NCBI RefSeq assembly: GCF_000737315.1
Contig: NZ_JMCB01000029.1
Coordinates: forward strand, 22,721 to 86,720
Reading direction: 5' to 3'
Origin: Hyalangium minutum
GTDB lineage: Bacteria; Myxococcota; Myxococcia; Myxococcales; Myxococcaceae
DNA length: 64,000 bases
Both the position numbers and the translations under genes were made by a program. The notes under the pieces are model-generated. The model was not told where the DNA came from and did not search any database. It worked only from the letters and a program-made list of their open reading frames with translations. This document shows positions 4,658 through 33,494 of the stretch, in pieces; within the stretch, counting starts at the first letter, position 1, and each line of letters begins with the position of its first letter.

Positions 4658-4675
4658 GCGAAGCGCGGTGGGCCG

Positions 4676-7032: not shown

Positions 7033-7083
7033 GCCCGCCGCATTCGACCGCGGCCCCCCCGGTGTGAGAAAAAGGGACTGCGG

Positions 7084-7569: not shown

Positions 7570-7910
7570 GCCGTCGTTCATGGAAGACGTGGGCTGCAGG
7601 GGCGTTGCTGGCGCTGCTGGCGGGGTGCGCCAGCGGAGGCTCGAACACAGTAGCTGCGGCCATCATCAACACCACCGTGGCGGTGGCTGCCTCGGGCGTG
7701 TCGCGCTCACAGGGCGGGTGCTTCTCAGCGTGTGCCCCGGGCACCACGTGCGATCCCAACACGGGCTACTGCGTCGCCCTGCCTTGCCGCGGCCGGTGCA
7801 AGGACCATGAGCAGTGCGTGGAGGACGGGTTCAAGAGCCAATGTGTCGCCCTGTCCCTGCCCGGACAGGTGACGGTGGAGCCGACCAAGGAAGCGAAGAC
7901 CGACCCGTGA
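7566..7910 (+). CDS. Small Cys-rich lipoprotein
   Basis: Lipobox LLAGC, then 8 further Cys in an EGF-like spacing; ATGA overlap with the upstream stop. Confidence 0.8.
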   Translation: MSRRSWKTWAAGALLALLAGCASGGSNTVAAAIINTTVAVAASGVSRSQGGCFSACAPGTTCDPNTGYCVALPCRGRCKDHEQCVEDGFKSQCVALSLPGQVTVEPTKEAKTDP

Positions 7911-9091: not shown

Positions 9092-9106
9092 CGAGAGGAC
9101 CAGGCC

Positions 9107-11661: not shown

Positions 11662-11724
11662 GGCGTTCTCCGAAGGTGGCTTCCCAAGCGGGCGTTCACT
11701 CCATCATACCGGGCCAGGTGGCCA

Positions 11725-15431: not shown

Positions 15432-15587
15432 GGCGGTCTCTCCTCGAAGACGCGGGCACAGGGGCGCTGACCCGCGAGTGACGATTCTACGCAACCTTTC
15501 CAGAGAACCGGTAAGGCATACCCTCACGGGTAGGTTTCACTTCTCGTCTTGATACGGCCTAGAGGGAAGAAGCGCCTTCCTTGGGAC

Positions 15588-16831: not shown

Positions 16832-19800
16832 TCAGCGCAGGTCGTCTTCGGAGACAGACGGGGAGGCGTCCGCGGGGGCGGCCTCCGGGCCACCTGCGCC
16901 CGAGCCAAGCTGCTGGAAGAGCGGCGGAGGCTCGTCCGCGAGGAACTCGGTGAGCGAGGCCAAGGCCTGCTCGCGCAGGGGGCTCTTGGTGGTCTCGTAG
17001 CACTCGTAGCGCTCGGCGAGGAACTGCTCCTGCCACAGCGGGTGCTGCGCGTAGGGCTCGAGCGCCGCCTGACACAGCCCGTGCCAGTCCAGCACCTTGG
17101 CCAGGGCAAGCCGCACCTTGTGGCGCTGCGTCTCCAGGGCGTAGGCGGCGAAGGGCTGCTCGAAGCGGGCATACAGGCGGCGGCCCAGCGAGGGCTCCTT
17201 CTGCGCCAGCTCCTGCGTGGCCTGCATCAGCAGGCTCGTCACCGTGCGCTGGCCCCAGGGCTCGCGGCGGAGCGCGTCGTAGGCCTGATCCAGCGCGTTG
17301 AAGGCCTCCGTCCACCGGCCCTGGCGCAGCCGCAGCTCGCCGAGCAGCACATCCGCCTCCATGGGCGCCAGCGTCCGCAGCTGCTCCAGGAAGGGCATCG
17401 CGGCTTCGTCGGCCGTCTGCGCCAGCGCGCGGCTCACCATCGTCAGCTCCAGCAGGCCCTTGGGCTGCCACCCGGCCTCGCGCCACCTGCGCACAGCGCC
17501 CGCCGCGTCACCCCGGGAGAGCAGCTCCAGGAACTCGCGGCGCTCCTGCACGGAGCGGGTGAACTTCAGCGGCGGCGTCAGCAGCAGGTTCTGGGAGGAG
17601 GCCGCCGCAAGCATGCGCTGCTGCTCCACGCGCTCCCAGTCCACCGAGCCGCGGCTCACCGTGGGCCGGTTCGCCTGCAGGGACGAGGCGCCCGCGCGCA
17701 GCATTACCCGCAGCGACAGGAACTCCCGGCGGCCCACCGTCCGGGCGATGGCGAACTCCATGAAGGAGCGATCGTCCGTGCTGATGAGCGCCTCCTGGCC
17801 CTCGGCCAGGTTCCGGGTGAGCGCGTCGTTGCCCAGGTAGTGGGCCATCACGCCCTCCAGCTCGTCCGTCTGCCACGCCACGAGCGCGGCCTTGCGGAAG
17901 GGCTCCTGGGTCAACCGGGCCCGCATCCGGTCCGCGTCGTAGGAGATCGGCGCCTCGGTGGCGATGAGCAGCAGGTCCGCGCTGTTCGTCTGCCACGTCT
18001 CCACCGCCGGGAACACCGAGGCCAGCGTGGCGTAGGCGCTGCGCATCGTCGTGGCGTCAATCTCATACGCCTGGAGCCACTGGATGAAGATGCCGCCGGG
18101 GGCCAGCCGCTGCCGCGCCGCTTGATAGAAGTCCTGGGTGAAGAGGCTGGAGATGCCGGCGCGGTAGGGGTTGGAGGGCTCGGAGAAGATGATGTCGTAC
18201 TGCTTCTGCGAGGCGAGCAGCACCTCGCGCGCATCTCCGATGAAGGTGTGCACCTTGGGGTTGGAGAGGACGTTCTGGTTCACCGGAGAGCACTGCTCGG
18301 CGAACTTGAGGATGGCGGGCTCGATCTCCACCACGTCCACGCGCTCCATGTCCGGAGCCGAGCCCATCCACCCGGCGGTGCTGCCGGTGCCCAGGCCGAT
18401 GACGAGCGCCTGCTTCGGCTGCGGGTGCAGCAGCATGCCCACCAGGCCGCTCATGACCTGGGTGGAGGCATCGCCGATGCTGTTTCCGTCCGACTTGCCG
18501 TTCACATAGAACGAGGGCCCATCCACGAGACGGACGCCCACGCTGCTCTCGAGGCCCTCGTACTCCCACTTCATCTCCCGGCGAGGCGTCTCCAGGAAGG
18601 TGCGCAGCGTATTGAGGGTGGGCCGCTCCAGCCGGGCCCGGCCCGCGCCGATGGGGTTGTGGCGCCAGCCCGCGGTGGGGCCCTCCTGCATCAGCATGAC
18701 GGCTGCCAGAGCGCCCACAGCGGCGGGCAGCCAGAGCCGGCCGGCCTGCTTCTCCCGCGTCAGCGAGAGCACGAAGGCGCCGCCCCCCAGCACCAGCAGC
18801 AGCGCCACCGCGAGCTTCCACGTTCCGGGCGCCGTCAGCAGCGGCATCAGCCCGAAGCCACCGGCCAGCGAGCCGATGATGGCGCCCACCGTGTTCCACG
18901 CGTACGTGAGGCCCACCTCGCGGCCCACATTCTCCCGGCCGCGGCCCAGCAGTGCCAGGAGCAGAGGGAACTGCACGCCGGAGATGAAGGCCGCCGGGAA
19001 GATGACGAGCGAGGCCACCACGGCCCAGCTCGACACGAGCCCCAGGAAGCCGAATCCCTCGAGCGGCCGGAGCATCATCGCGAGCACCGCCATGCGGTCT
19101 CCCAGCGCATAAGGCAGCGCCATGAAGAGCGCCTCGGCCAGACACGTGAGCGCGAAGCCGCGCAGCGTCGCGGGCCGGTCCTGTCCCCACGCCGCGTAGG
19201 CCGCGCCGCCCAGGCCGATGCCCAGCAGCGCGACGATGAGGATGAGGCCGAAGGTGAAGGTGGAGCCACCCAGCAGCGGGCTCAGCATCCGGTACCAGAC
19301 GAGCTCCATCAGCAGGAAGGCGAAGCCCACCGCCGCCGCGGCGCCCAGCACGAACCGGGGCGGCGCCACCCCCACCTGGGCCTTGGCCACGGAGGCCGCT
19401 GCGGGCTCGGCTCCGGAAGCGGTCTCGGGCGCCACCACGGGGGCGGCGGCGGGGACACTCTGCTCCGGCAGCGAGCGCGAGGCCACGCGGGCGGCCACGG
19501 CCACCAGCCCGTTGACGAGACACGCCAGCCACAGCGTCTGCTGGGTGCCGAAGACTTCGAAGAGGAAGAAGGTGGACAGGGCGGCGCCAGCCACGGCGCC
19601 CAGGGTGTTCACGCCATAGAGCACAGCCAGGGCGCGCCGCCGCACGTCATCGGGGGTCTCCGCCGCGCGGGCTGCCGCGGGCAAGGTGCCCCCCATCAGG
19701 ACCGTAGGCACGGCGAGCAGCAGCGCGGAGAGCACCAGCCGCACGATGCTGCCACCCACCAGCCCCAGCGACACGGTGCCGCCGAGCGCCACATAGACCG

Positions 19801-20086
19801 TGCGGGCCAGCCACACCAGGGCCGGGGTCAGCGCCGCGCTCACGGCGATGAGGGCCTCCAGGTTGCCGTAGAGCTCCAGGGGACGGCGGTGCTTGTCGGC
19901 GCGAGAGCCCAGCAGCGCTCCGCCCAAGCCGAGGCCGGCCATGAAGATGGCGAGCACCGCCGCCGAGGCCGCGGTGGAGGCGCCGAAGATGAGCCGGAGC
20001 TCTCGCTGCCACGCGGTCTGGTAGATCAATGCGCACAGCCCCGAACCGAACAGGAACGGGGCGATCTTCAGGGCACGGGCATTCAT
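16832..20086 (-). CDS. Fused membrane (MFS-like) / spermidine-synthase-like SAM-dependent protein
   Basis: SGLCALIYQTAW, LMGGTLP, LYGVNTLGA, duplicated TM block; ALVIGLGTGST, DVVEIEP, GDAREVL, DIIFSEPSNP. Confidence 0.88.
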   Translation of the reverse strand: MNARALKIAPFLFGSGLCALIYQTAWQRELRLIFGASTAASAAVLAIFMAGLGLGGALLGSRADKHRRPLELYGNLEALIAVSAALTPALVWLARTVYVALGGTVSLGLVGGSIVRLVLSALLLAVPTVLMGGTLPAAARAAETPDDVRRRALAVLYGVNTLGAVAGAALSTFFLFEVFGTQQTLWLACLVNGLVAVAARVASRSLPEQSVPAAAPVVAPETASGAEPAAASVAKAQVGVAPPRFVLGAAAAVGFAFLLMELVWYRMLSPLLGGSTFTFGLILIVALLGIGLGGAAYAAWGQDRPATLRGFALTCLAEALFMALPYALGDRMAVLAMMLRPLEGFGFLGLVSSWAVVASLVIFPAAFISGVQFPLLLALLGRGRENVGREVGLTYAWNTVGAIIGSLAGGFGLMPLLTAPGTWKLAVALLLVLGGGAFVLSLTREKQAGRLWLPAAVGALAAVMLMQEGPTAGWRHNPIGAGRARLERPTLNTLRTFLETPRREMKWEYEGLESSVGVRLVDGPSFYVNGKSDGNSIGDASTQVMSGLVGMLLHPQPKQALVIGLGTGSTAGWMGSAPDMERVDVVEIEPAILKFAEQCSPVNQNVLSNPKVHTFIGDAREVLLASQKQYDIIFSEPSNPYRAGISSLFTQDFYQAARQRLAPGGIFIQWLQAYEIDATTMRSAYATLASVFPAVETWQTNSADLLLIATEAPISYDADRMRARLTQEPFRKAALVAWQTDELEGVMAHYLGNDALTRNLAEGQEALISTDDRSFMEFAIARTVGRREFLSLRVMLRAGASSLQANRPTVSRGSVDWERVEQQRMLAAASSQNLLLTPPLKFTRSVQERREFLELLSRGDAAGAVRRWREAGWQPKGLLELTMVSRALAQTADEAAMPFLEQLRTLAPMEADVLLGELRLRQGRWTEAFNALDQAYDALRREPWGQRTVTSLLMQATQELAQKEPSLGRRLYARFEQPFAAYALETQRHKVRLALAKVLDWHGLCQAALEPYAQHPLWQEQFLAERYECYETTKSPLREQALASLTEFLADEPPPLFQQLGSGAGGPEAAPADASPSVSEDDLR

Positions 20087-20370
20087 ACGGTTCTCTCGTC
20101 TGAGCGCGCCGTCGGGGGCCCCTCCGGGGGGACTCGGGGCGCGCTGGGGCGCGGATTAAACCGCAGCCCCCTCGACTCGGCCATAAACGTCCGCACGCAT
20201 TCCCGGAGGGCACGCGAGCGGCCGGGCCCCCTCCCCTGCTTCCGCTGGCCGAGGTGCGTGCCCCGGCTCCCCCTTGCGGGCTCGGCTCGTCGGCTGCTCT
20301 CCTCTGGACGGGGACGCGGCGCGTGGTTATATGCCGCCCTGTTCGATGGGCTTAGGAGAGCGCATCGGGC

Positions 20371-20413
20371 CCGGACGAGAGGTGCGCCGTACCCGGTCAC
20401 GACAAGACGACGC
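20371..20413 (+). ncRNA. Guanidine-III (ykkC-III) riboswitch
   Basis: CCGGACGAGAGGTGCGCCGTACCCGGTCACGACAAGACGACGC closely follows the ykkC-III pattern as recalled (CCGGACGAGG.GCGCCGUACCCGGUC.G.ACAAGACGGCGC), lies 6 nt upstream of the AAGGAG RBS, and precedes a SugE/Gdx gene. Confidence 0.85.
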
Positions 20414-20432
20414 CTACTGAAGGAGTGCTGTC

Positions 20433-20759
20433 ATGTCGTGGGTTCTCCTGGTCGTCGCCGGGTTGCTGGAGGTCTGCTGGGCCATCGGCCTCAAGTACAC
20501 CGATGGTTTCTCCAAGCTCCTCCCCAGTCTCTTCACCGTCACCGCCCTCATCGCCAGCATCGGCTTGCTTGCGCTCGCAGCCCGAAGCCTGCCCATCGGC
20601 ACCGCCTACGCTGTATGGGTGGGAATCGGGGCCTTGGGCGCGGCCATTCTTGGCATCGTGCTCTTCCGCGAGCCGGTCACCGGGTCGCGCCTCTTCTTCC
20701 TCGCGCTGCTCTTCATCTCCATCGTTGGACTGAAGCTCACCAGCGGTGACGGACGCTGA
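20433..20759 (+). CDS. sugE: SMR-family guanidinium exporter (SugE/Gdx)
   Basis: MSWVLLVVAGLLEVCWAIGLKYTDGF...LPIGTAYAVW.GIGA, near-identical in pattern to SugE; four TM helices. Confidence 0.93.
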   Translation: MSWVLLVVAGLLEVCWAIGLKYTDGFSKLLPSLFTVTALIASIGLLALAARSLPIGTAYAVWVGIGALGAAILGIVLFREPVTGSRLFFLALLFISIVGLKLTSGDGR

Positions 20760-20906: not shown

Positions 20907-21971
20907 TTAGAGGGGAACCGTGGTGCAGCAGCCTGACTTCGCGCAACGCAGGTAGCCCTGGGAGACACAGGCCGAGTCTTCAGTACATGAGGGTCCCTGG
21001 TTCGGGCTGCTGCACTTGCCGCCCGTCCCACTGGAACTGGAGCCGCCGGAGGAGCACTGGCCCGCAGCCTGGATCGTCACGTTCTGGCAATGATTAACGA
21101 AACAGCCGTTGTCGTAAGCGGACTGCGTCGTGTTGTTCGGGCAGGCGGTCCGGACTTGGGATGGGACCGAACCGAGGCCCGTGTTCTTCAGGCAGATGCC
21201 CACCTGCGTGAGGTTGCAGTTCGAGTCGCAACTGAGCACGACGGACTCGGGGGAGCCAAAGGCAGCCCGCAGCTCCGTGGCTGACACCGTGCCGCCCACG
21301 TTTTGCGCCAGCAGCGCCGGGGTCCCCTGGTCACCGGGCAGGGCCTTCAGCTCGGTGATGGCCGAGGAGAAGTAGGTGCCGGAGTCCAGGCCCGTGCAGC
21401 TCCCGTGCTTGGGCCACTCATGGTCCGCCAGGAAGTCGTTATCGGACACGTAGCCGGGACCATAGATTTTCATGGCCTCTGGAATGGTGGAGGGATCCGG
21501 GAAGCAGCCGGACGGAGGGTTCTTCGAGGTGCAGGAGCCGTAGGGGGCGCAGTACTGGGGCCAGGCGTATTGGGACCCTGCCTGCTGGGCTTCCGCATCC
21601 GTGTAGCTCGGCCAGAGGCCGTGGATCGTCAGATGGGTGGCTCCAAAACTGCCACTCAAACCCTGGCACTCCTCCTTGTCCGGGTGGCCACAGCAGAAGT
21701 TGGGAGCCCAGGAAAGTGCCAGCAGATAGAACCCAAAGGGGACCGCCGTGCCGGGGCCGCCGTTGGGGCTGCCCGCGGCGTTCGCCCCGTTGGGCGTGAT
21801 TCCGGACGCAAGGGGACGCAGGTTGAACTCCTCGGCCACCTTGTCAGGAGCCGCGCGGACGGACGAGGCGGCCGGATTCTTCGGCTGTGAGGCCTCGGAG
21901 GGCGCGGGCGTCGTACGGACGCAGGCGGACCACAGGCTGACCAGGACAAGACTTGGGACGATGCGCCGCAT
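20907..21971 (-). CDS. Ribonuclease T2 family lipoprotein with Cys-rich C-terminal extension
   Basis: Lipobox WSAC; FYLLALSWAPNFC, CAS I TIHGLWP, CAS II HEWPKHGSC. Confidence 0.9.
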   Translation of the reverse strand: MRRIVPSLVLVSLWSACVRTTPAPSEASQPKNPAASSVRAAPDKVAEEFNLRPLASGITPNGANAAGSPNGGPGTAVPFGFYLLALSWAPNFCCGHPDKEECQGLSGSFGATHLTIHGLWPSYTDAEAQQAGSQYAWPQYCAPYGSCTSKNPPSGCFPDPSTIPEAMKIYGPGYVSDNDFLADHEWPKHGSCTGLDSGTYFSSAITELKALPGDQGTPALLAQNVGGTVSATELRAAFGSPESVVLSCDSNCNLTQVGICLKNTGLGSVPSQVRTACPNNTTQSAYDNGCFVNHCQNVTIQAAGQCSSGGSSSSGTGGKCSSPNQGPSCTEDSACVSQGYLRCAKSGCCTTVPL

Positions 21972-22110: not shown

Positions 22111-25100
22111 ATGGCCAAGCAAGTGTCGTTTTTCCTCAATGGCAGGCCCGTCACCATCGAGGACCCGTCACCGGAGCTGCTGCTGATTGATTATCTGCGC
22201 TCTCCCGAGGTCGCGCTGGCGGGCCCGAAGAAGCCCTGCGGACAGGGCGGATGCGGTGGCTGTACCGTCATCCTCTCGAATTGGAACGAGAAGGAGCGCC
22301 ACGCCGAGCATCGCGCCATCAACTCCTGCCTGCGCCCGGTGCTGGCGCTGGAAGGCCTGGTGGTGACGACGGTGGAGGGCACGGGCGCCGCGCGGCGGCC
22401 GAACCCCAGGAACCTGTCCCACTCCGCCCTCTACTCCCGCGGGGGCGCGCTGCCAGAGCTGCAGACCCTACCCCAGCCGGCGGTGGTGGAAGCTCAGCAG
22501 GCGGCCAACAAAAAGCGCCTGGAGGTGATCGCCCGCGTCAACAAGGCCCAGCCCCAGACCCTGACCGCGGAGCTTCGGCAGGAGGTGCCGATCCACCCCA
22601 CGGAGTTCTCGCACGAGGGCATGAACCCGGTGGCCCACCGGCTGGCGATGAACAACGGCACGCAGTGCGGCTACTGCACCGTGGGCTTCGTGATGAACAT
22701 GTCGGAGTTCATCACCAACCACCCCAAGGCCACCAAGCGCGAGATCGAGGAGATCTTCGACGGCAATCTGTGCCGCTGCACGGGCTACCGCTCCATCCTC
22801 ACCGGGATGAAGACCTTCGCCTCCGACTGGACGAAGGAGGACGCAGAGAACCGGATGGAGTGCCTGCCGGATGACTACGCCGCGCACCAGGTCCCCGCCC
22901 CACGCGTCGTGATTCCGTTCCCGCCCGCGGCGCAGGTGGCTGCCAGCGGCGTGTCACTGGACGACGGCGCGCGCGTGTGGCGCACCCCCACCAGCCTGGT
23001 GGAGCTGGCCCGCCTCATGCGCCAGTTCCAGGGAAAGAAGGTGCGCCTGGTCCACTCCAACACCGCCTACGGCATCTACAAAGAAGAGTACCTGGAGGCG
23101 GATATCTACCTGGACATCCGGTCCATCCCGGAGCTGAACGCGGAGCCCAAGGAGACGGAGGGCGGGCTGCGCGTCGGGGCTGGAATGAACTACAGCGAGT
23201 TCATCCGGGTGCTGGAGCGCACGATGCTCTCCGTGGGCGAGGCCCAGGCCCGGAAGCACGAGGAGACGGACTACCCGGAGACGACGCGGCTGGGGGCCAC
23301 GCGCTTCATGGCGCGTCGGACCGCCGGGCGGATCGTCCGCAACGCGGCGTCGCTGGGCGGCAACACGATGCTGGTGCTCAAGCACATGGCCGAGGGCACC
23401 GGCGAGCCGTTCCCGTCGGATGTGTTCACGGTGCTGGCCGCCATCGACGCGCAGATCGAGTACCTGGACACGCAGGAAGGCGAGGCAGCCCAGCCGCGGC
23501 GCGCCACGGCCCTGGAGCTGGTGGAGCAGGTCATCGCCAACCCCAAGCTGGCGGACAGCATCGTGCTGCTGGCCTACCACGTGCCGTTCGGCAAGGAGAA
23601 CGAAGTCGTCCTGGCGCAGAAGGTGGCGCTGCGAGACGTGAATGCGCACAGCATCCTCAACGGGGCCAGCCGGCTGCAGCTGTCGAAGTCGCTGGAAGTA
23701 GAAGAGGCGGTGGTGGTGTTCGGAGGCATTGCTCCCTACCCGTGGCGCGCCCGGAAGACGGAGCAAGCGCTGAAGGGCAAGACACTGTCATTGGCGGCCG
23801 TCCCAGCGCTGGCCAAGAGCTTGGCCGACGAGGTGGGCGTGGAGCTGACGCGCTGGTCCCTGCGCATGCAGGGGCTGCCGTCGGAGGGCTTCACGAATGA
23901 GTACCGGATGCAGCTGGCCACGGCGTTCCTCTACAAGGCCGTGGTGAAGACGCTGCTGGAGCGGGGCGGCGAGGTCCCTCATGCGCTCCAATCGGCGGGG
24001 GAGATCAAATGGGGCAATTGGGGAGTCAGCGACGGCACGCAGGATTACAAGCCCCAGCCCTACAAGGCGCCCGTCGCGCAGCCCTACATCAAGGACACGG
24101 CGATGCAGCAGGCCTCCGGGCAGTTGCACTACACCCATGAGCTGCCGGTCCCTCCGAGGACCCTCAACGCCTCCTTCGTCCTGAGCCGGCGGGCTCTGGC
24201 CACCTTCCACTTCATCATCCCTGGCAGTGACGAGGCTGCCAGCGCGGGCGATCTGCGCAAGCACCTCTCGAGCCGCTACGGTGGCTTCGTCGATCTCATC
24301 ACCGCCGAGGTCTTCAAGGACGGTGGGATCAACAATCAGGGCATGGGGGCCGACCAGCCGCTCTTCGCCGCTGGCGAGGTGAATTATGTGGGCCAGTCCA
24401 TCGCGCTGGTGTTGGCGAGAACGGAGCAGGAGGCCGAGCGCATCGCCGGGTACGTCACCGAGCGCTGCATCGGCTACGCTCCGGTCAAGCCCGAGTCGAG
24501 GCTGCAGCTTCGCTCGCTGAAGCAGTCCCCGACTTGGTGGTCGGAGCCGGTGTTGACCCTCGATGATGCCATCCGCCTGGGGAGCGTCTACCCGGACTAC
24601 CCCACCCAGTCACCCTCCGTGTCACACATCTGGAAGGTGACGCGAAACGGGAGCCGGTTCGACTGGGTCACTCCCAAGGACACACCGGAGCAGCGGATCG
24701 ACCGGACGATCGTCAACCGGACAGGGACGCTGGACGGCATCTCCTGCCAGATCGTCGAGAGCACGCAGACGTGCGGGGGCCAGGCGCACTTCTACATGGA
24801 GACGCAGGCAGCGATCGCCGAGCCCCTGGACAACCATCGCATGCTCATCCGGCCCTCCTCGCAGAGCCCCAGTTCCATGCACCAGACCACTGCCATGGCG
24901 CTGGGCGCGAGCTACAACAGCATCGAAGTGCAGGTCCCTCCGGTGGGCGGTGGCTTCGGCGGCAAGACGGAGCAGGCCCGCTTCGTGGCGGGGGCGGCGG
25001 CCATCGCCGCGCAGGCCACCAAGCGGCCGGTGCGCCTGGTCCTGTCTCGCGAGCAGGATACGGCGATGATTGGCAAGCGCCACGCCTACTTCGCCCAGTA

Positions 25101-26733
25101 CCAGATCGCCATCGACCGGGGCGAGGTGAACCCGAAGGACAAGGGCCTCATCCGCGGGTTGCTCAACAAGATGTGGGGCGATGGCGGCGCTTTCTACGAC
25201 TGCTCCTTCGTCGTCTCCAACTGCATCCAGACGCGCTCGGATAACGCCTACCGGATCGCCAACTTCGAGTCGCAGATCGACGTGTGCCGGACGAACACTG
25301 CGCCGAGCACCGCGTTCCGATCATTCGGAGACGTGCAGGGCAAGCTGATGCTGGAGAACGCGGTGGACGACGCGGCCTTCTCCATCGGCATGCTGCCGGA
25401 GGACGTGCGCGAGAAGAACCTCTACGAGCGAGGGGATGTAACGCCGTTCGGGCAGCCGCTGTCGTACTGCTACATGCGCCAGGTCTGGGCGTACCTGAAG
25501 CAGAAGAGCCATTACGAGGCGAAGCGCCAGCAAGTGGACGCGTTCAACGCGGCCAACCGCTGGCGCAAGCAGGGGCTGGCGATGATGCCCGTGAAGTACG
25601 GCTCGGGCTACAACCTGGCGATGCTGGAGCAGGCAGCCGCGGTCGTCTCGGTGTACCACGGCGACGGCACCATCATCATCCACCAGGGCGGCGTAGAGAT
25701 GGGGCAAGGCCTGCTGACGCAGGTCCGTCAGATCGCCTCCTACGTGCTCAACGTGCCCATGGACAAGATCCAGGTCGAGGCGGCCAGGACGGCCGTCGTT
25801 CCCAATCCCACCGGCACCGGGGCGTCGACGGGAACGGCCTATAACGGCGAGGCGGTCAAGCGCACGTGCCAGGATCTGGCCTCGCGGCTGATGGCCTTCG
25901 GCTACGAGCTGCTGAAGGAGCAAGGCAACGATTGGTGCCACAGCCGGAACATCGACTTCTGGAACTACGGTGAGGCGGGCTGGAGCACCGAGGTGGACAA
26001 CAACGGGACCAAGAAGCTCATCTGGCAGAACCTGGTGGCCATGGCCTACCAGTACCGCGTGGGCCTGACGGCCACCTTCACCGCGCCCATCCCGGGAGGC
26101 GAGACGCCCATGCCGGCGCTCACCTACAAGCCGCTCGAGCTGCAGCCGGAGCTCCCCGGCTACAAGGCGAGCTCGACGGGCAAGCCCGGCGGATACGACT
26201 CGTTCCCGGGCTTTACCTACTCGGCCGCGTGCTCGGTGGTGGAGGTGGACATCCTGACGGGCGAGGTGAAGGTGTTGAGCGCGGACATCGTCTACGACAT
26301 GGGCTGGAGCCTGAACCCGGCCATTGACGTGGGCCAGGTGGAGGGCGCCTTCGTCCAGGGGCTCGGCTACGTGCTGTCCGAGAAGCTGGCCTTCGAGCCG
26401 AGTGGGCCGGAGGCCGGACGCCTCAACTCGGTGAACACCTGGCGCTACAAGCCACCGGCCGTGACCAGCATCCCGCTGGAGCTGAACGTGTCCCTGTTCC
26501 CGCGCGACTCAGTGGACGTGCCGGCGAGCCCCACCGAAGGCATCTTCTCCTCGAAGGAGATTGGCGAGCCGCCGCTGGTACTGGCCACCAGTGTGTTTCT
26601 GGCGGTGAAGGCGGCCATCCGCGCCTCGCGCCTGGAGCGCAAACTCGACGGCCTGTTCCGCTTCGACGCTCCGGCCACTGTGCAGGAGGTGCGCAGGGCC
26701 TGCGAGGTGAGTGAGAACGATCTCAAGGTGTAA
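22111..26733 (+). CDS. Single-chain xanthine oxidoreductase / aldehyde oxidase family molybdo-flavoprotein (2x[2Fe-2S]-FAD-Moco)
   Basis: CGQGGCGGC..NSCL and CGYC..GNLCRCTG (Fe-S); RNAASLGGN (FAD); GGQAHFYMET, GGGFGGK, TAFRSFG, GVEMGQGL, GQVEGAFVQG, SKEIGEPPL (Moco). Confidence 0.92.
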   Translation: MAKQVSFFLNGRPVTIEDPSPELLLIDYLRSPEVALAGPKKPCGQGGCGGCTVILSNWNEKERHAEHRAINSCLRPVLALEGLVVTTVEGTGAARRPNPRNLSHSALYSRGGALPELQTLPQPAVVEAQQAANKKRLEVIARVNKAQPQTLTAELRQEVPIHPTEFSHEGMNPVAHRLAMNNGTQCGYCTVGFVMNMSEFITNHPKATKREIEEIFDGNLCRCTGYRSILTGMKTFASDWTKEDAENRMECLPDDYAAHQVPAPRVVIPFPPAAQVAASGVSLDDGARVWRTPTSLVELARLMRQFQGKKVRLVHSNTAYGIYKEEYLEADIYLDIRSIPELNAEPKETEGGLRVGAGMNYSEFIRVLERTMLSVGEAQARKHEETDYPETTRLGATRFMARRTAGRIVRNAASLGGNTMLVLKHMAEGTGEPFPSDVFTVLAAIDAQIEYLDTQEGEAAQPRRATALELVEQVIANPKLADSIVLLAYHVPFGKENEVVLAQKVALRDVNAHSILNGASRLQLSKSLEVEEAVVVFGGIAPYPWRARKTEQALKGKTLSLAAVPALAKSLADEVGVELTRWSLRMQGLPSEGFTNEYRMQLATAFLYKAVVKTLLERGGEVPHALQSAGEIKWGNWGVSDGTQDYKPQPYKAPVAQPYIKDTAMQQASGQLHYTHELPVPPRTLNASFVLSRRALATFHFIIPGSDEAASAGDLRKHLSSRYGGFVDLITAEVFKDGGINNQGMGADQPLFAAGEVNYVGQSIALVLARTEQEAERIAGYVTERCIGYAPVKPESRLQLRSLKQSPTWWSEPVLTLDDAIRLGSVYPDYPTQSPSVSHIWKVTRNGSRFDWVTPKDTPEQRIDRTIVNRTGTLDGISCQIVESTQTCGGQAHFYMETQAAIAEPLDNHRMLIRPSSQSPSSMHQTTAMALGASYNSIEVQVPPVGGGFGGKTEQARFVAGAAAIAAQATKRPVRLVLSREQDTAMIGKRHAYFAQYQIAIDRGEVNPKDKGLIRGLLNKMWGDGGAFYDCSFVVSNCIQTRSDNAYRIANFESQIDVCRTNTAPSTAFRSFGDVQGKLMLENAVDDAAFSIGMLPEDVREKNLYERGDVTPFGQPLSYCYMRQVWAYLKQKSHYEAKRQQVDAFNAANRWRKQGLAMMPVKYGSGYNLAMLEQAAAVVSVYHGDGTIIIHQGGVEMGQGLLTQVRQIASYVLNVPMDKIQVEAARTAVVPNPTGTGASTGTAYNGEAVKRTCQDLASRLMAFGYELLKEQGNDWCHSRNIDFWNYGEAGWSTEVDNNGTKKLIWQNLVAMAYQYRVGLTATFTAPIPGGETPMPALTYKPLELQPELPGYKASSTGKPGGYDSFPGFTYSAACSVVEVDILTGEVKVLSADIVYDMGWSLNPAIDVGQVEGAFVQGLGYVLSEKLAFEPSGPEAGRLNSVNTWRYKPPAVTSIPLELNVSLFPRDSVDVPASPTEGIFSSKEIGEPPLVLATSVFLAVKAAIRASRLERKLDGLFRFDAPATVQEVRRACEVSENDLKV

Positions 26734-26767: not shown

Positions 26768-28252
26768 ATGAACGCTAAAACCCTCACTGCCCGGCTTCGC
26801 CGGCGCAGCCTCTCGAAGTCTGTCTTGTTGGGCGCCTCGATGGCGCTGTCCGCGGTGTCCACTGGGGCCCTCGCCCAGACCACCGCGCCCGCTCCGGCGG
26901 CCGTGGCCAAGGATCCCGCCGAGGCTGCGGCCCTGCTGCGCAAGCCCGAGGGCTACAAGCTCCAGCAGAACCCCTTCCCGGACTTTGGCTACATGGTCAC
27001 CGTCGATGAGTACATGCAGAAGTACTCGGACCAGCCGCTCTTCCGGCTGAAGACGGACTTCCCCACCGCCAAGCCGAAGCAGCAGCCGGACTTCGTCCAG
27101 AAACTCGACTTCCGGAAGAACCCGCTGGACTACCTGCTCGCCGTGCGGGACTACGCCTTCGACGGCAACCTGCCGGATTGGGACCCCTTCAAGAACGCCA
27201 AGCGCAGCTGGTACCACATCCCTTGGCTCCACCCGTCCGCGCGGGGGCCGAATGCCTATCCTCCGAACGGCGGCACCGAGGGTTTCCACGGGCTGATCAA
27301 GGAGGCTCAGCTCAGCCCGCTGCAGCTCGGGCCGGGCCAGAAGGGGAAGGCGAAGGGCGGCTACTCCGTCTACGCCATCACCCTGGTCAATGACATGGCA
27401 GGGTACACGCTGGGGCAGATGTGGAAGGACCCCTCGAACCCGGACCCCAGGGCAACGGACGCACGCTACGGCGGCGGCTTCCCGCCGGGCACCGTGTTCG
27501 CCAAGCTGCTGTTCACCGACGCGCCCCAGGGGACTGACAAGCTCCCCTTCCTCGAGAACCCCCTGCAGTGGACGGCATACATCACCGAGAATTTCACCTC
27601 CAAGAAGCGTGTGGTGGGCAAGGTGAACCTGCTGCAGATGGACATCGCCGTGCGCGACGTGCGCGCCGAGGGGCCAGACGGGACGGGCTGGGTGTTTGGG
27701 ACGTTCGCGTACAACGGCCAGGTGAACAACCCCAACAAGTTCCTGAACCTCGTCCCGGTGGGGATCACATGGGGCAATGATCCCCAGAACACGGTGAACA
27801 CCACCAACCCGTTCCCGCCCACGGAGACAAAGGTCAACCCGGAGCTGAAGCAGACCATCATCTTCCCCTCCCCGCAGCTGCCGCCGCAGCACCTGGGGTG
27901 GAACGGGCGGCTGAACGGGCCCGCGGACCTGAACACCACCTCGTGCCTGAGCTGCCACATCGCGGCGCAGTACCCCGCGGTGACGGCGCTGGTGCCGCCG
28001 AGCGCGGCTCCGGCGGGCGGCAAGGAGCCGCCCAAGGACGGAGGCACGAAGGAGTGGATGCAGTGGTTCCAGAACGTGCCGGCGGCCACCTCCATGGATC
28101 CGCGCGTCTACTCGACGGACTTCTCGTTCCAGGTGGCCATCAGCCTGGAGAACTTCTACGAGGCGAAGAGGCGGCTGCAGGAGGGCTCTTACGCGAGCGA
28201 CTACCAGTTGGACCGCGTGCCGCTCGTCCGCGACGGCCTGCCCCGGCAGTAG
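26768..28252 (+). CDS. Exported monohaem c-type cytochrome-like protein of unknown function
   Basis: Signal peptide (..GALA-QT); one C-terminal-half CLSCH haem motif; PPGTVFAKLLF, MDIAVRD, GWVFGTF, resembling the cytochrome P460/c-prime-beta fold (inferred); AGGAAG RBS; starts 34 bp after the Mo enzyme. Confidence 0.7.
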   Translation: MNAKTLTARLRRRSLSKSVLLGASMALSAVSTGALAQTTAPAPAAVAKDPAEAAALLRKPEGYKLQQNPFPDFGYMVTVDEYMQKYSDQPLFRLKTDFPTAKPKQQPDFVQKLDFRKNPLDYLLAVRDYAFDGNLPDWDPFKNAKRSWYHIPWLHPSARGPNAYPPNGGTEGFHGLIKEAQLSPLQLGPGQKGKAKGGYSVYAITLVNDMAGYTLGQMWKDPSNPDPRATDARYGGGFPPGTVFAKLLFTDAPQGTDKLPFLENPLQWTAYITENFTSKKRVVGKVNLLQMDIAVRDVRAEGPDGTGWVFGTFAYNGQVNNPNKFLNLVPVGITWGNDPQNTVNTTNPFPPTETKVNPELKQTIIFPSPQLPPQHLGWNGRLNGPADLNTTSCLSCHIAAQYPAVTALVPPSAAPAGGKEPPKDGGTKEWMQWFQNVPAATSMDPRVYSTDFSFQVAISLENFYEAKRRLQEGSYASDYQLDRVPLVRDGLPRQ

Positions 28253-28442: not shown

Positions 28443-29819
28443 TCAGGACTCCCGAACGGCGTTGCCCTCACGGCCCGGCGCCGCCAGCACCATGCCCAGC
28501 GCCGCCGTGGCGGTGAGCAGCGCGGCCACGGCGAACTGCGTGGCGAAGTGGCCTCGGGCCAGTGACAGCGCCGCCACCGCCAGCGAGCCCCCCAGCAGCC
28601 GCGTCGCGTAGAGGCTGCTGGTGACGATGCCCCGGTGGTGCCACGGCGCACGCGACTGCGGCCCGAGGATCGAGGTGCTCGCCGCGGGCCCCAGCCCCAC
28701 CCCCAGCACGGCCAGCGAGGCGAAAGCCCCTCCGATGCCCCACCCCTGTGCTGCTGCCAGCGCCAGCAACCCGGCGCCACAGGCCGCCAGCACGAAGCCC
28801 GCCCCTGCGCTCGCGCGCATGCCTCCGCGCACCAGCACCTTCACCCCCAGGGTGGAGCCCACCGACCAGCCCAGCAGCATTGGCACCAATGCCAGGCCCG
28901 CTCCAATCGGGGTGTGCCCGCCCTGCTCCGTCATCCACAGCGGCACCCACGTGGACATCGTGTAGAGCAACGCTCCGGCGAACAGGCCTCCTGCGATGCC
29001 GCTGAGCACGGTGCGGTCCCGCAGCAACTCCGGCGGAATCACCGGCGAGGCGCTCACCCGCTGCTGGCGCACCAGCCCCACGCCCACCGCCACCGCGCCC
29101 AGTGCGCACAGCCCCCGCACCACCACCGCCGAGCCCGGCTCCAGCGCGAAGAGCAGCAACGCCACGCACGTGCCCACCAGCAACGGCCCCCATGCGCCCA
29201 TGGGCCCCTGCGCGCGCTTCGGCGGATCCCGGTACGACAGGTGCAGCAGCCCCGCCGCGAGCAGCCCCACCGGGAGGTTCACCAGGAACACCCATCGCCA
29301 CGACGTGTGCATCACCAGCCACCCCCCAATGAGCGGTCCGAGCGCATTCGCGGCCCCCCACGCTCCGGTGAAGAGCCCTTGGATCGCCGCGCGCTCGCGC
29401 AGGGTGTAGAGGTCCGAGCTGATCGTCAGCGTCGTGGGTTGAAGCGCTCCGGCGCCCAGGCCCTGAGCCACGCGGAAGGCAATCAGCGCGGGCACCGAAG
29501 TGGCCAGTCCGCACAGCGCCGAGCCCGCCAGGAACAGCCCCATCCCCGCCAGGAACACCGGCTTGCGCCCCAGCCGGTCTGCCAGCTTGCCGGAGACGAG
29601 CACGCCCACGGTCGAAGCGAAGAGGAAGGCCGAGAACACCCACGAGTAGAGCTCCTGGCCGCCCAGCTCCCGGGTGATGACGGGCATGGCGCTCGTCACC
29701 ACCGTGCCCTCGAAGGCGCTGACCACCAGGGCCAGCAGCACCGCGCCCGTGGCCACCCGCCGCGCCGCTCCCGAGTTGACGCGAACCTCGCTCTCCACCG
29801 TCATCCCGCTTCCATCCAT
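28443..29819 (-). CDS. MFS drug/H+ antiporter (DHA2-like)
   Basis: FEGTVVTSAMP, GKLADRLGRK (motif A), RVAQGLGAG, WRWVFLVNLP; about 13-14 TM segments. Confidence 0.9.
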   Translation of the reverse strand: MDGSGMTVESEVRVNSGAARRVATGAVLLALVVSAFEGTVVTSAMPVITRELGGQELYSWVFSAFLFASTVGVLVSGKLADRLGRKPVFLAGMGLFLAGSALCGLATSVPALIAFRVAQGLGAGALQPTTLTISSDLYTLRERAAIQGLFTGAWGAANALGPLIGGWLVMHTSWRWVFLVNLPVGLLAAGLLHLSYRDPPKRAQGPMGAWGPLLVGTCVALLLFALEPGSAVVVRGLCALGAVAVGVGLVRQQRVSASPVIPPELLRDRTVLSGIAGGLFAGALLYTMSTWVPLWMTEQGGHTPIGAGLALVPMLLGWSVGSTLGVKVLVRGGMRASAGAGFVLAACGAGLLALAAAQGWGIGGAFASLAVLGVGLGPAASTSILGPQSRAPWHHRGIVTSSLYATRLLGGSLAVAALSLARGHFATQFAVAALLTATAALGMVLAAPGREGNAVRES

Positions 29820-29845
29820 GCTCTCCCTATAAGCGGGCGCGTTCC

Positions 29846-29869
29846 ATGCGGAAATCGCATCTTCCGCAT
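29846..29869. promoter_or_regulatory. LysR-type operator between divergent MFS and lysR genes
   Basis: ATGCG-gaaat-CGCAT (palindromic T-N11-A box) nested in an 8-bp inverted repeat atgcggaa...ttccgcat. Confidence 0.65.
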
Positions 29870-29889
29870 AGAGTCCTTGCGAGAACCGC

Positions 29890-30807
29890 ATGACCTCCGA
29901 ACAGCTCCGAGCATTCCTCCAGGTGGCCCAGGAGGGCCGCTTCTCCACCGCCGCGAAAGGACTGGGCCTGTCCCAGTCTGGACTCTCGCGCCAGCTCCAG
30001 TCCCTGGAGACCGAGCTCGGAGTCCGCCTGCTGGTACGCACGCCCGCCGGCGCGGTGCTCACGGACGCGGGGGAGCGCTTCCTGCCCCATGCCCGGCGGG
30101 CCCTCGAGGCGCTGTTCGCCGGCACGGCCGAGCTGGAGCAGCTCTCGGGCATACCCCACGGCCCGCTGGCGCTCGGCTCCCTGCACACCGTGGGGGCGTA
30201 CCTGCTGCCGGACCTCATCGCCGCCTTCGCCCGGAGCTACCCGGAGGTGCGGCTCCGGCTGAGCGAGAGCCTCGCCCCCGAGCTGGAGGAAGGCGTCTCC
30301 CGAGGCGTGCTGGATCTGGCCATCCTCTCCCTGCCCGTGCGCCGAGCGGACCTTGTAGCGCAGAAGCTGTGGGAAGAACCCCTGGTGCTCGCCGTGCCCC
30401 GAGGCCATCCGCTGACGAAGCTGGGCCGGGCCGTGGCGCTCACCGAAGTCGTGGAGGAGCCCTGGGTCGTCATCCCCGGGATGACGGGCACCCGAGCGCT
30501 GGAGGCCGCCTGCGAGGCGCGGGGCGTGACACCTCGGGTGGTACTGGAGACGGACAACTCGGAGGCCATGCGCCGCATGGTGGAGCGCGGGCTGGGCGTG
30601 GCGCTGGTGCCGGAGCTCATGACGCGCGACCACCCCGCCCGGGAGTTCGACATCGTCCAGGTGGTCCCGGGTGGACCGCGCCGCCAGGTGGCGCTCGTGC
30701 ACCGGGGAGAAGGCTATCTCACCGCCGCCGCCCGGGCCTTCAAGAAGTTCATTGTGGAGCACGTGCGCAAACAGCCTGCAATACGAAGTGCAGAGGCGCA
30801 GCGCTGA
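29890..30807 (+). CDS. LysR family transcriptional regulator
   Basis: QLRAFLQVAQEGRFSTAA..LGLSQSGLSRQLQSLE.ELG..LL.R..LTDAG. Confidence 0.93.
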   Translation: MTSEQLRAFLQVAQEGRFSTAAKGLGLSQSGLSRQLQSLETELGVRLLVRTPAGAVLTDAGERFLPHARRALEALFAGTAELEQLSGIPHGPLALGSLHTVGAYLLPDLIAAFARSYPEVRLRLSESLAPELEEGVSRGVLDLAILSLPVRRADLVAQKLWEEPLVLAVPRGHPLTKLGRAVALTEVVEEPWVVIPGMTGTRALEAACEARGVTPRVVLETDNSEAMRRMVERGLGVALVPELMTRDHPAREFDIVQVVPGGPRRQVALVHRGEGYLTAAARAFKKFIVEHVRKQPAIRSAEAQR

Positions 30808-30897: not shown

Positions 30898-31365
30898 ATG
30901 GGAATGAAGCTCGACATCAATGGCTCGGTCCGCGAGGTGGAAGCCAGCGGCGACATGCCGCTGCTGTGGGTCCTGCGTGACCTTCTGCAACTGAGCGGGA
31001 CGAAGTACGGCTGCGGAATGGCGCAGTGTGGGGCGTGCACGGTGCACCTCGACGGCAAGCCCGTTCGCTCCTGCGTCACCCCCGTCTCGAGCGTTGGTGC
31101 GCGCAAGGTCACCACGATCGAGGGGCTGTCACCGGACGGTTCGCACCCCGTGCAGCGCGCATGGTCCGAGGCGGATGTCGTGCAATGTGGCTACTGCCAG
31201 TCCGGTCAGATCATGACGGCCGTGGCGCTGCTCGAGAAGAAGCCCGATCCGACGGACTCCGACATCGACGCCGCGCTGTCGGGCAACATCTGCCGCTGCG
31301 GGACGTACGAGCGCGTGCGCGAAGCGGTCCGGCTCGCCGCGAAGCTGAAGCGAGGTGCGAAGTGA
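30898..31365 (+). CDS. [2Fe-2S] small subunit of isoquinoline-1-oxidoreductase-like molybdoenzyme (IorA-like)
   Basis: [36 protein letters not shown]. Confidence 0.92.
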
Positions 31366-33494
31366 CAGTCTCTCGACGAGGATTCCTCACGGGTGCGGCG
31401 GCGAGCACGGCGGGGCTGGTGATCAGCTTCTATGTGCCGAAGATCGTGCACGCCGCGCCCAAGGCCGCGCAGCCGCTGCCGTCCCCGAACGCGTTCCTGC
31501 GGATCGGCAGTGATGACTCGATCACCGTCCTGCTCGCGCACTCCGAGATGGGCCAGGGAATCTGGACCGGCCTGGCGATGCTGATCGCGGAAGAGCTCGA
31601 CTGTGACTGGTCGAAGGTGCGCTGCGAGCACGCCCCCGCGGCGCCGGTCTACGGCCACCCCGCCATGGGCATCCAGATGACGGGCGGGTCCACGTCCACG
31701 CATGGCGAGTTCGACCGGTACCGCAACGTGGGCGCGACGGCGAAGGCGCTGCTCCTGCGCGCAGCCGCGGAGCGATGGAAGACCACGCCAGCGAAGCTCT
31801 CCGCCGCGAACGGGGTGATCACCTTCGGTGGAGAAAGGCTGACGTACGGCGCGGTCGCCGAGGCGGCGATGAAGCTGTCCCCTCCGAAGACGGTGAAGCT
31901 CAAGGAGCCGAAGGAGTGGAAGCTGATCGGCACCAAGGTGCGCCGGCTCGACACGCCCGAGAAGATCAACGGCAAGGCACAGTTCGGGATCGACGTCTCG
32001 TTCCCCGGGCTGCGCACCGCTGTCGTGCTGCGGCCGCCGGCGTTCGGCGCGAAGCTCGTGAAGTTCGATGCCGCCGATGCGCTGAAGGTCCCTGGCGTCG
32101 AGAAGGTCGTCCAGACCGCGAACGGTGTCGCGGTGGTCGCCAGCCACTTCTGGGCGGCGAAGCTCGGCCGTGATGCCGTGCGCGCGGAGTGGTCGACGCC
32201 CGAGGGCGGCGGTGCCAGCTCCGAGAAGATCCTCGCCGAGTTCCGCCAGCTCTCGCTCGGCGAGGGCTCGACCGTGGCCGACACCGGCAAGGTGAAGGAA
32301 GCGCTCAACCTCTCCGCCAGCAAGCTCGAGGCGTCGTACGAGGTGCCGTACCTCGCGCACGCCATGATGGAGCCGCTCAACTGCACCGTGAAGATCGACG
32401 GTGATCGCTGCGAGATCTGGACGGGGACCCAGTTCCAGACCGTTGATCAGGGCACCGCGGCGCACATCCTGGGCACGACGCCCGACAAGGTCACGATCCA
32501 CACCACGTTCCTCGGCGGTGGCTTCGGCCGCCGCGCGAACCCGGCGTCGGACTTCGTCTCCGAGGCCGTGATCGTCGCGAAGGCGGCCGGCGTCCCGGTC
32601 AAGGTCGTCTGGACGCGCGAGGACGACATGCGCGGTGGGTACTACCGCCCCGCCTACGTCCACCGCGTCAACGTCGGCATCGACAAGGCGGGCCTGCCCG
32701 CAGCGTGGCATCACGTCATCGTCGGGCAGTCGATCCTCGCTGGCACTCCGTTCGAGAAGTTCATGGTCCACAACGGCATCGACGCGACGTCAGTCGAAGG
32801 CGTCGCCGACTCGCCTTATCTCGAGACCACGAAGTCCAAGCACGTCTCGCTGCACTCCCCGAAGACCCCGGTCACCGTGCTGTGGTGGCGCTCCGTGGGC
32901 CACACGCATACCGCGTTCGCGATGGAGAGCATGATCGACGAGCTGGCACACGCCGCCGGCAAGGATCCGCTCGCGTACCGCCTGGAGCTTCTGAAGGGGA
33001 AGCCTCGGTTCGCGCGCGCACTCGAGACGGCCGCAGCCAAGGCGGGCTGGGGAACGCCCGCCCCCGAGGGCCGGGCGCGGGGCCTCGCGGTGCACGAGTC
33101 GTTTGGCTCGATCATCGCCGAGGTCGCGGAGGTCTCGGTCGAGGGGGGACGCATCAAGGTCCACGCGGTGACGGCGGCGGTCGACTGCGGAACCGCGGTC
33201 AACCCGCTCGGAATCGAGGCTCAGGTCCAGGGCTCGATCGCGTTCGGGCTGACTGCGGCGCTCCACGGCAAGCTGACCATCGAGGACGGCAGGGTCATCG
33301 AGAGCAACTTCCACGACTATCCCGCGCTTCGCATGTTCGAGATGCCGAAGATCAGTGTTCACCTGATCCCCAGTGACGCGAAGATGGGTGGCATTGGCGA
33401 GCCAGCGACCGCGCCCGTCGCTCCCGCCGTTGCGAACGCGGTGTTCGCGCTTACCAAGCAACGGCTGCGCACGCTGCCGCTGCGCCTCGCATAG
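31362..33494 (+). CDS. Tat-exported molybdopterin-binding subunit (IorB-like)
   Basis: GTG start overlapping the upstream stop; twin-arginine SRRGFL; [37 protein letters not shown]. Confidence 0.9.

Follow-up and report, generated by a model that had tools for sequence, protein, structure and literature searches.

A single-chain molybdenum hydroxylase with a predicted non-xanthine pocket is linked across bacterial phyla to an exported protein with a haem c motif

Results

The locus

The DNA analysed here, referred to as the window, is a 64,000-nucleotide stretch of the Hyalangium minutum genome (assembly GCF_000737315.1, contig NZ_JMCB01000029.1, positions 22,721 to 86,720 of the forward strand; coordinates below are those of the window). 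It carries, at 22111-26733, a gene that we call X, encoding a single-chain molybdenum hydroxylase of the xanthine oxidoreductase (XOR) family that has no signal peptide, and, at 26768-28252, a gene that we call P, encoding an exported protein of 494 residues with one c-type haem motif, as judged from its open reading frame (ORF) and homologues. Both genes, and all of their features given below, lie on the forward strand. P starts 34 bp past the X stop codon, with AGGAAG placed 8 nt ahead of its ATG.

Domain architecture of X

X is one ORF of 1540 residues, running from the ATG at 22111 to the stop at 26733. In agreement with an earlier reading made from the sequence alone (the sequence-only reading), it holds Fe-S, FAD and molybdenum cofactor (Moco) domains in a single chain, recognised here as seven Pfam domains. 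Two [2Fe-2S] domains come first, the one at residues 8-74 (22132-22332; Fer2) with Cys43, Cys48, Cys51 and Cys73, and the other at residues 170-233 (22618-22809; Fer2_2, E 4e-21) with Cys186, Cys189, Cys221 and Cys223. They are followed by the FAD domain (22978-23943), composed of FAD_binding_5 (residues 290-456) and CO_deh_flav_C (residues 504-611), in which the motif ASLGGN pairs with ASIGGN of rat XOR in a motif alignment, then by the a/b hammerhead (residues 670-782, 24118-24456; Ald_Xan_dh_C) and by the Moco domains (24748-26475), MoCoBD_1 (residues 880-1104, E 2e-60) and MoCoBD_2 (residues 1129-1455, E 2e-67). The window has a G+C content of about 67% and its nearest relatives are Hyalangium and Archangium; the presence of the full xanthine oxidase (XO)-family Pfam series in order, with E values down to 2e-67, excludes a chance ORF in high-GC DNA. 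All eight Fe-S cysteines are found in each of 121 homologues, drawn from Myxococcota, Acidobacteriota, Bacteroidota, Verrucomicrobiota and Proteobacteria, and none of the X homologues has a signal peptide.

Over its whole length, X matches rat, human and bovine XOR in the PDB at about E 1e-163, the aldehyde oxidases (AOX) AOX1 and AOX3 at E 1e-151 and Rhodobacter capsulatus XdhB at 5e-95. An AlphaFold model of residues 640-1540 (predicted local distance difference test, pLDDT, 76.6) aligns with chain C of bovine XO with a template-modelling (TM) score of 0.82-0.86, and the Foldseek E value of this Moco-part model against the XO C chain is 1e-61. Together, these similarities point to X being a functional member of the XO family, with the Fe-S, FAD and Moco equipment of the xanthine dehydrogenase (XDH)/AOX type.

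The extra length of X relative to XOR is explained by three insertions that sum to about 185 residues. The sequence-only reading had recognised the first of these in the Fe-S region, with a size of 80-90 residues that proved too large, and had missed the other two, which are in the Moco part. Insertion 1, between the Fe-S domains (residues 96-169, 22396-22617), measures 74 residues and is left unaligned against rat XOR in HMMER. Insertion 2 (residues 783-879, 24457-24747) extends about 55 residues beyond XOR and is predicted to be structured, with pLDDT mostly 64-94, and insertion 3 (residues 1264-1362, 25900-26196) adds, by alignment, about 56 residues within the Moco domains. Insertion 1 is the least conserved part of X (mean conservation 0.50). 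Its length is 60-75 residues in the main clade of homologues, 15-46 in two other fused relatives, and 2-6 in most related fused clades and in a second group of X proteins, subfamily B, which is 38-42% identical to X. Since it is variable, poorly conserved and missing in relatives, insertion 1 is best seen as a clade-specific linker and not as a defining feature.

The substrate pocket of X

Pocket residues were mapped through a HMMER alignment to rat XOR (in which the numbering is that of the bovine enzyme), gapless through the relevant motifs, and the Glu1261 column was set by alignment to bovine XO chain C. The catalytic core appears intact, as had been proposed from the sequence alone: in addition to the Fe-S cysteines and the ASxGGN motif, Arg912 and Phe914 have their equivalents in Arg1070 and Phe1072, catalytic Glu1261 in Glu1486 of the motif GEPP (26566-26568), and Gln767 in Gln918 (24862-24864). 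In the last case the residue had been given correctly as retained and its motif had not, as Gln918 lies in PSSQSPS and the GGQAH cited for it aligns with rat Gln739.

The residues that orient purines in XDH are replaced. Glu802-Thr803 corresponds to Thr953-Glu954 (GGKTEQ, 24967-24972), and along the pocket helix (25201-25236) Leu873 corresponds to Cys1031, Ser876 to Val1034, Arg880 to Cys1038 and His884 to Arg1042. Phe1009-Thr1010 corresponds to Tyr1167-Asn1168 (25609-25614). The exchanges of Glu802 to Thr, Arg880 to Cys and Phe1009/Thr1010 to Tyr/Asn had been picked out by manual alignment in the sequence-only reading, and alignment to rat and bovine XOR does not restore an equivalent of either Glu802 or Arg880. 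Furthermore, the structure of the human E803V mutant (2E1Q) fixes the column independently, its Val aligning with Thr953.

Across the 121 homologues Gln918, Thr953, Glu954, Cys1031, Arg1042, Arg1070, Phe1072, Tyr1167, Asn1168 and Glu1486 show no variation, while Cys1038 is kept in 117 and gives way to Ser in the other four. Subfamily B keeps the Thr (Cys in one member), both Cys and the Tyr-Asn pair, and has Thr in place of Glu954 and Gly in place of Arg1042. The core pocket signature of the X clade, as read from these alignments, is thus Thr/Cys/Cys/Tyr-Asn. Glu954 was considered as a displaced Glu802 and rejected, being Thr in subfamily B. Cys1031 and Cys1038 (25201-25224), which occupy the Leu873 and Arg880 sites, are seven residues apart, and both occur in both subfamilies.

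The conservation of the replacements in 121 members and in subfamily B argues for a defined specificity rather than decay. In R. capsulatus XDH, the double exchange E232V/R310M at the positions equivalent to Glu802 and Arg880 abolished all purine activity (PMC2671166). The replacement of both equivalents suggests that X has a non-purine specificity and that its clade is a distinct one with a non-xanthine pocket, which agrees with what the sequence-only reading had predicted. X should leave xanthine and hypoxanthine unoxidised, and its substrate should be another polar heterocycle or an aldehyde.

Placement of X among known enzymes

Over 120 full-length X homologues of 1500-1560 residues, 60-96% identical to X, were obtained in a homology search, in Myxococcota, Acidobacteriota, Bacteroidota, Verrucomicrobiota, Alpha-, Beta- and Gammaproteobacteria and other hosts. 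The clade spans at least eight bacterial phyla, identity between phyla being typically about 60%, and JGI labels its members 'xanthine dehydrogenase/oxidase'. Against the NCBIfam models of named molybdenum hydroxylases, those for XDH and AOX included, X never reaches the cut-off. Its scores against the XDH equivalogs (TIGR02963/TIGR02965) are 486 versus a cut-off of 849 for xdhB and 231 versus 467 for xdhA, and against TIGR02969 (mam_aldehyde_ox) it reaches 566 bits versus 1912.

When 1.84 billion cluster representatives were searched, 15,283 relatives of the Moco part of X were found. The fused ones, of 1300-1530 residues, form a continuum with many different pockets, and those looked up were bacterial or metagenomic. 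In a neighbour-joining tree, which is rough and carries no support values, X falls inside a superclade of environmental fused bacterial enzymes and apart from the canonical XDH clade (QE[TS]L.RH..FFTE), in which XdhB-length and eukaryote-length proteins stand together. Given these many fused bacterial relatives and the position of X among them, the term 'eukaryote-style' used in the sequence-only reading fits the architecture and does not hold as a mark of eukaryotes. Other fused bacterial XOR-type proteins of the X superclade, known from metagenomes (e.g. P0393, P0397; Pyrinomonadaceae, Eremiobacterota), have 1340-1450 residues; their pockets differ from that of X (e.g. QETVPLS, QQFCPLN), and they have neither insertion 1 nor a P gene.

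Mammalian XOR (bovine 1FO4/3AMZ, rat 1WYG, human 2CKJ) shares with X the single-chain order of two [2Fe-2S] domains, FAD and Moco. Its Moco part is about 32% identical to that of X, and Gln767, Arg912, Phe914, Glu1261 and the Fe-S cysteines are common to both. X differs in its Thr/Cys/Cys/Arg/Tyr-Asn pocket, its three insertions, the lack of the FFxGYR motif, its bacterial host and the adjoining haem-protein gene, a seemingly obligate neighbour. R. capsulatus XdhAB (1JRO) has the same fold (TM 0.82) at 29-30% identity, but it consists of two subunits and retains Glu232 and Arg310, whereas X is one chain with both replaced; the score of X is lower against XdhAB (322 bits) than against a eukaryotic Moco fragment (391 bits).

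FFxGYR occurs in 15 of 29 canonical XDH representatives at one column block and is absent in the X clade. In XDH-NAD structures this motif is tied to the use of NAD+ as electron acceptor. Judging from this motif, X probably passes its electrons to an acceptor other than NAD+, which may be O2.

The loss of Glu802 and Arg880 and of the NAD site in a single chain is shared with AOX (human AOX1 4UHW, mouse AOX3 3ZYV), and X could be pictured as a broad, detoxifying, O2-using oxidase of this kind, with P either unrelated to it or a scavenger of its reactive oxygen species. The similarity of X to AOX1/AOX3 nearly equals that to XOR, and Arg1042 lies at what we take to be the position of human AOX1 Lys893, which would place a cationic residue four after the Arg880 site in both. 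The AOX pocket is hydrophobic, however, mouse AOX1 having Val806 and Met884 at the Glu802 and Arg880 sites (PMC2671166), whereas that of X has Thr and two Cys, and a polar Thr/Cys/Cys/Tyr-Asn pocket conserved across phyla fits a single defined substrate better than a broad range. X is also far below the mammalian AOX cut-off and away from the eukaryote-length clades in the tree, and the tight operons with P, DNase II and phosphoesterase genes described below would be unexpected for a general detoxifier. We therefore regard this possibility as rather unlikely, and the label 'aldehyde-oxidase-like', also part of the sequence-only reading, as a partial analogy that extends to the two lost residues and stops short of the residues replacing them.

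The partner gene P

P begins with a signal peptide (residues 1-36, 26768-26875, by reading of the sequence) that has an RRR n-region and ends in GALA before Q. Its haem c attachment motif, CLSCH (residues 393-397, 27944-27958), is invariant in homologues. About 770 sequence clusters are homologous to P; all are named 'hypothetical', with one exception named 'cytochrome c domain-containing'. Every P homologue has a signal peptide and a CxxCH motif, and about 160 positions are invariant across 60 P sequences.

The only family detected for P is Pfam Cytochrome_P460 (PF16694), found, below threshold, in five of six homologues with E values of 2e-5 to 8e-4. With an AlphaFold model of P (pLDDT 73.8), the top 19 Foldseek matches in the PDB are all cytochrome P460 or c'-beta, at scores that are weak (E 0.01-0.4, TM to target 0.29-0.37). 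A Variovorax homologue 37% identical to P has the PGAP name 'cytochrome P460 family protein'. Like cytochrome P460/c'-beta (2JE2, 6AMG, 7ZS4), P is exported and has its single CxxCH close to where a beta-sheet domain ends. Its size is about 2.7 times theirs (some 458 mature residues versus about 160), with large N-terminal and internal additions, and its gene adjoins genes for cytoplasmic oxidoreductases or hydrolases rather than for nitrification. We propose with moderate confidence, on the basis of these weak profile and fold matches, that P is a new member of the P460 superfamily, larger than the known ones, and its conserved CxxCH suggests that it binds haem.

A candidate for the P460 haem-cross-link lysine, which we treat as a lead, is Lys246 (GTVFAKLLFTD, 27503-27505), present in 60 of 60 sequences and also in homologues of about 30% identity. 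Its G-T-V-x-x-K motif with the invariant Lys resembles the P460 cross-link site, and its register agrees with the endpoints of the Pfam Cytochrome_P460 match. Automated alignments did not reproduce this register: when P was compared with a P460 sequence, hhalign and hmmsearch paired CxxCH alone.

In most phyla the signals of P are plain Sec or lipoprotein signals (MKRTFFLQALFSCLCLGSLASAQ; several lipoboxes). In Myxococcota only, the n-region of P resembles that of a twin-arginine translocation (Tat) signal (RLRRRSLSK here, SRRGFPK in Hyalangium gracile), an unexpected feature where a c-type haem motif is present.

The Myxococcota n-regions and the tight coupling of the two genes would be compatible with X being exported folded, hitch-hiking on the P signal, with P as its periplasmic cytochrome acceptor. 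Periplasmic XO-family enzymes with Tat-bearing small or cytochrome subunits offer precedents (PaoABC, 5g5g; ALDH, 8gy3). The plain Sec and lipoprotein signals in most phyla speak against this arrangement, and so does the covalent attachment of haem c, which requires Sec export of the unfolded protein; X, furthermore, retains its own FAD exit site. We consider joint export very unlikely, and the distribution of P signals rules out Tat hitch-hiking as a general mechanism. The inner membrane should separate X from P, making direct electron transfer between them unlikely.

Linkage of X and P across genomes

Using P as bait and one genome per species, we collected 80 loci. A full-length X is adjacent to P and co-oriented with it in 63 of them, in the order X-P in 55 and P-X in eight; the median distance between the two genes is 45 bp. 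In about ten further loci X is cut by a contig end, which brings the paired loci to about 73 of 80, and the few P loci lacking X have contig ends or X fragments only. The adjacency spans at least eight bacterial phyla and includes subfamily B. With X as bait, P was adjacent in six of seven loci from different phyla.

P is absent from the examined neighbourhoods of related fused clades with other pockets, so that the X-P pairing appears specific to the Thr/Cys/Cys pocket. One of these clades has a nucleoside hydrolase, an adenosine deaminase, XdhC and a molybdate transporter nearby, an ordinary purine context.

Genes recurring beside X-P

Clustering of all neighbouring ORFs of the X-P loci revealed several accessory genes. 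A PF04185 phosphoesterase of about 508 residues occurs in 23 loci, and a longer form of about 690 residues in four roseobacter loci; among solved structures it is closest to plant NPC4 (3e-51), with Francisella AcpA as a more remote relative. DNase II is linked to X-P in 18 loci and matches Burkholderia thailandensis DNase II (5I3E) over its full length at E 5e-156. XdhC, the Moco chaperone that accompanies R. capsulatus XdhAB, is likewise linked in 18 loci. A multicopper oxidase of laccase/CueO type with a Tat signal is present in 11, often together with a second P paralogue.

The DNase II and phosphoesterase genes are found in Bacteroidota, Verrucomicrobiota, Pyrinomonadaceae and Colwellia, and their products have no signal peptides. 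The DNase II of B. thailandensis is similarly devoid of a secretion signal, its role in bacteria is unknown, and the paper describing it does not mention a linkage to the XOR family (PMC5449587). Examples operonic with X-P are at 11525-14145 in locus L039 and at 4255-5379 and 11517-13064 in locus L031.

With D for DNase II, E for the phosphoesterase and C for XdhC, the gene order is X-P-D-E-C in Flavobacterium, D-X-P-E in Chthoniobacterales, P-X-D-E in Pyrinomonadaceae, C-X-E-P in Colwellia and E2-X-P in roseobacters. This variation among phyla argues for selected linkage rather than inherited synteny.

An ordinary fused XDH acting in purine catabolism, its pocket substitutions simply tolerated, would also be found near nucleases, as X is in many loci; the best PDB and NCBIfam similarities of X are to XOR, XdhA and XdhB, and the JGI names agree with this. 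The evidence from the pocket and from the neighbourhood is against it. Both purine-orienting residues are replaced in a conserved manner, by an exchange of the kind that eliminates the purine activity of R. capsulatus XDH, and X scores far under the equivalog cut-offs. Among the clustered neighbouring ORFs, genes for uricase, allantoinase and guanine or adenine deaminase are not recurrent near X, whereas genes of purine context do accompany a different fused clade. X is thus very unlikely to be an ordinary XDH.

The pair formed by the multicopper oxidase and the second P paralogue, which is about 31% identical to P, adjoins or diverges from X-P in Myxococcota and Bryobacterales. It lies at 6840-10086 in locus L009 and at 11131-14776 in L084, and upstream of X in L018, L027 and L033. 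NirK was considered for this oxidase and ruled out, as the protein is of the three-domain laccase/CueO type.

Distant P homologues (30-37% identity) on plasmids of Variovorax, Rhizobium and Agrobacterium still have a signal peptide and a CxxCH, and the conserved Lys is kept as well. Their neighbours encode cytoplasmic amidohydrolases, a glucose-methanol-choline (GMC) oxidoreductase and a ferritin-like protein (L092 7887-10775; L094 6261-12456; L093 7839-10832). The P superfamily therefore appears to pair with several kinds of cytoplasmic enzyme.

A role for X-P in a defence system was considered and rejected, as none of the four proteins X, P, DNase II and phosphoesterase matched a PADLOC defence model.

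Other genes in the window

Divergent from X, at 20907-21971 on the reverse strand, is a gene for an RNase T2-family lipoprotein (Pfam E 1e-14), whose linkage to X is confined to the Hyalangium lineage (the same arrangement in L001, L056 and L084). Further upstream, a guanidine-III riboswitch (20355-20416, forward strand; Rfam RF01763, 48.5 bits versus a gathering threshold of 36) directly precedes a gene of the small multidrug resistance (SMR) family encoding 108 residues (20433-20759, forward strand; PF00893, E 2e-27), and the two probably form a guanidinium exporter unit. Given its position 1.3 kb upstream of X, a link through guanidine (guanine to 8-oxoguanine to guanidine) was considered; it was dropped because the SMR gene and riboswitch occur in none of about 90 other loci.

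The region before the riboswitch holds genes for a sugar-type periplasmic binding protein (14436-15527, reverse strand), a hybrid response-regulator/HATPase protein (15605-16795, forward strand) and a 1084-residue protein with a spermidine-synthase-like domain (16832-20086, reverse strand). Convergent on P is a major facilitator superfamily (MFS) transporter gene (28443-30218, reverse strand) that is not conserved in other loci. A LysR regulator (29890-30807, forward strand) is followed by a second, split molybdenum hydroxylase on the forward strand, with a [2Fe-2S] small subunit at 30898-31365 and a Moco subunit within the ORF 31026-33494; this enzyme is of the IorAB/aldehyde dehydrogenase type and has no FAD subunit.

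Discussion

We propose that X is a cytoplasmic molybdenum hydroxylase with a non-xanthine pocket, that it belongs to a module shared across phyla with the exported haem protein P, and that the module oxidises a compound from nucleic-acid or phosphoester breakdown; we put the probability of this reading as a whole at roughly 55%. In X, by homology to XOR, the Mo-OH group would attack the substrate with Glu1486 activating it, Gln918, Arg1070 and Phe1072 would hold the cofactor and the ring, and electrons would pass from Mo through the two [2Fe-2S] clusters to FAD. Our best guess for the substrate, a nucleic-acid-derived heterocycle other than xanthine, comes from the recurrence of nuclease, RNase and phosphoesterase neighbours, which is an association only. 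X would act inside the cell, and P, on the periplasmic side, would deal with a precursor or product of the same route, or with a small by-product of it that can diffuse. The sequence-only reading was right in its core and too narrow in its scope; it missed the adjoining P, the most informative feature of the locus.

Several observations weigh against our proposal. The predicted placement of X and P on opposite sides of the membrane leaves the role of P a guess. Among the evidence on P, its P460 scores (20.3-25.2 bits) are under the Pfam gathering threshold of 27, and a P profile searched against PDB sequences returned nothing. For X, the cofactor-contacting active-site loops of the model have pLDDT below 50, and the region of the FFxGYR motif is poorly aligned, so that its absence carries moderate weight. 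Only some 40% of the loci contain nuclease or phosphoesterase genes, and XdhC, DNase II, the phosphoesterase and the multicopper oxidase were not found in the 64-kb window itself, where, of such genes, the minimal X-P pair is accompanied by the divergent RNase T2 gene only. In the literature we found no biochemistry of any member of the X or P family; searches on fused bacterial XDH, P460 with XDH, DNase II with XDH and the Flavobacterium phosphate response returned nothing on either, and one on the Glu802/Arg880 residues was likewise empty.

The paradox of topology would be solved if a small uncharged molecule passed between the two proteins, and nitrogen oxides are one candidate: X would reduce nitrite, N-oxides or N-hydroxy compounds at Mo, and P would bind or oxidise nitric oxide (NO) or hydroxylamine in the periplasm. 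Characterised cytochromes P460 and c'-beta bind NO and hydroxylamine, and the Foldseek targets of P include complexes with these ligands. XO-family enzymes can reportedly take oxygen atoms from nitrite, which would be a precedent for such chemistry in X, and its two pocket cysteines could be proton donors or sites of nitrosation. Nitrogen-cycle genes are not recurrent near X-P, however, and the linked copper oxidase is not NirK. The amidohydrolases and the GMC oxidoreductase that accompany distant P homologues have no connection to nitrogen oxides, and the similarity of P to P460 is weak. We think this scheme improbable.

Hydrogen peroxide would also cross the membrane. X, which has no NAD motif, could produce it, and P could be an extracellular haem peroxidase using it for antagonism or polymer oxidation, in the manner of milk xanthine oxidase and lactoperoxidase. 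The links of the P family to laccase-like enzymes and a GMC oxidoreductase are typical of oxidative attack, and many hosts are predators or polymer degraders. The idea is one of analogy only, though; H2O2 made in the cytoplasm would be costly, amidohydrolase partners fit it poorly and, to our knowledge, peroxidase activity is not known for the P460 fold. We find it quite improbable.

The proposal that X and P jointly oxidise a compound from nucleic-acid or phosphoester breakdown can be carried further, in a form that we hold only tentatively and consider doubtful. X-P may constitute an oxidation pathway not described before, with an oxidase-type X in the cytoplasm and an enlarged P460-like P beyond the inner membrane, that acts on a non-xanthine nucleic-acid base and has spread horizontally with DNase II and NPC-type phosphoesterases in soil and marine bacteria. 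If true, it would give the bacterial DNase II its first functional context; the X-P link itself may be the first genomic context for this enzyme, and is testable.

A small number of pocket residues serve to read the specificity of XO-family enzymes, and the conserved two-Cys pocket of the X clade implies a defined reaction. P belongs to a superfamily with the appearance of a new P460 branch, which recurs also with laccase-like, GMC and amidohydrolase enzymes. X-type proteins are probably misnamed 'xanthine dehydrogenase/oxidase', and this annotation would lead reconstructions of purine metabolism astray in Acidobacteriota, Bacteroidota, Verrucomicrobiota and Myxococcota.

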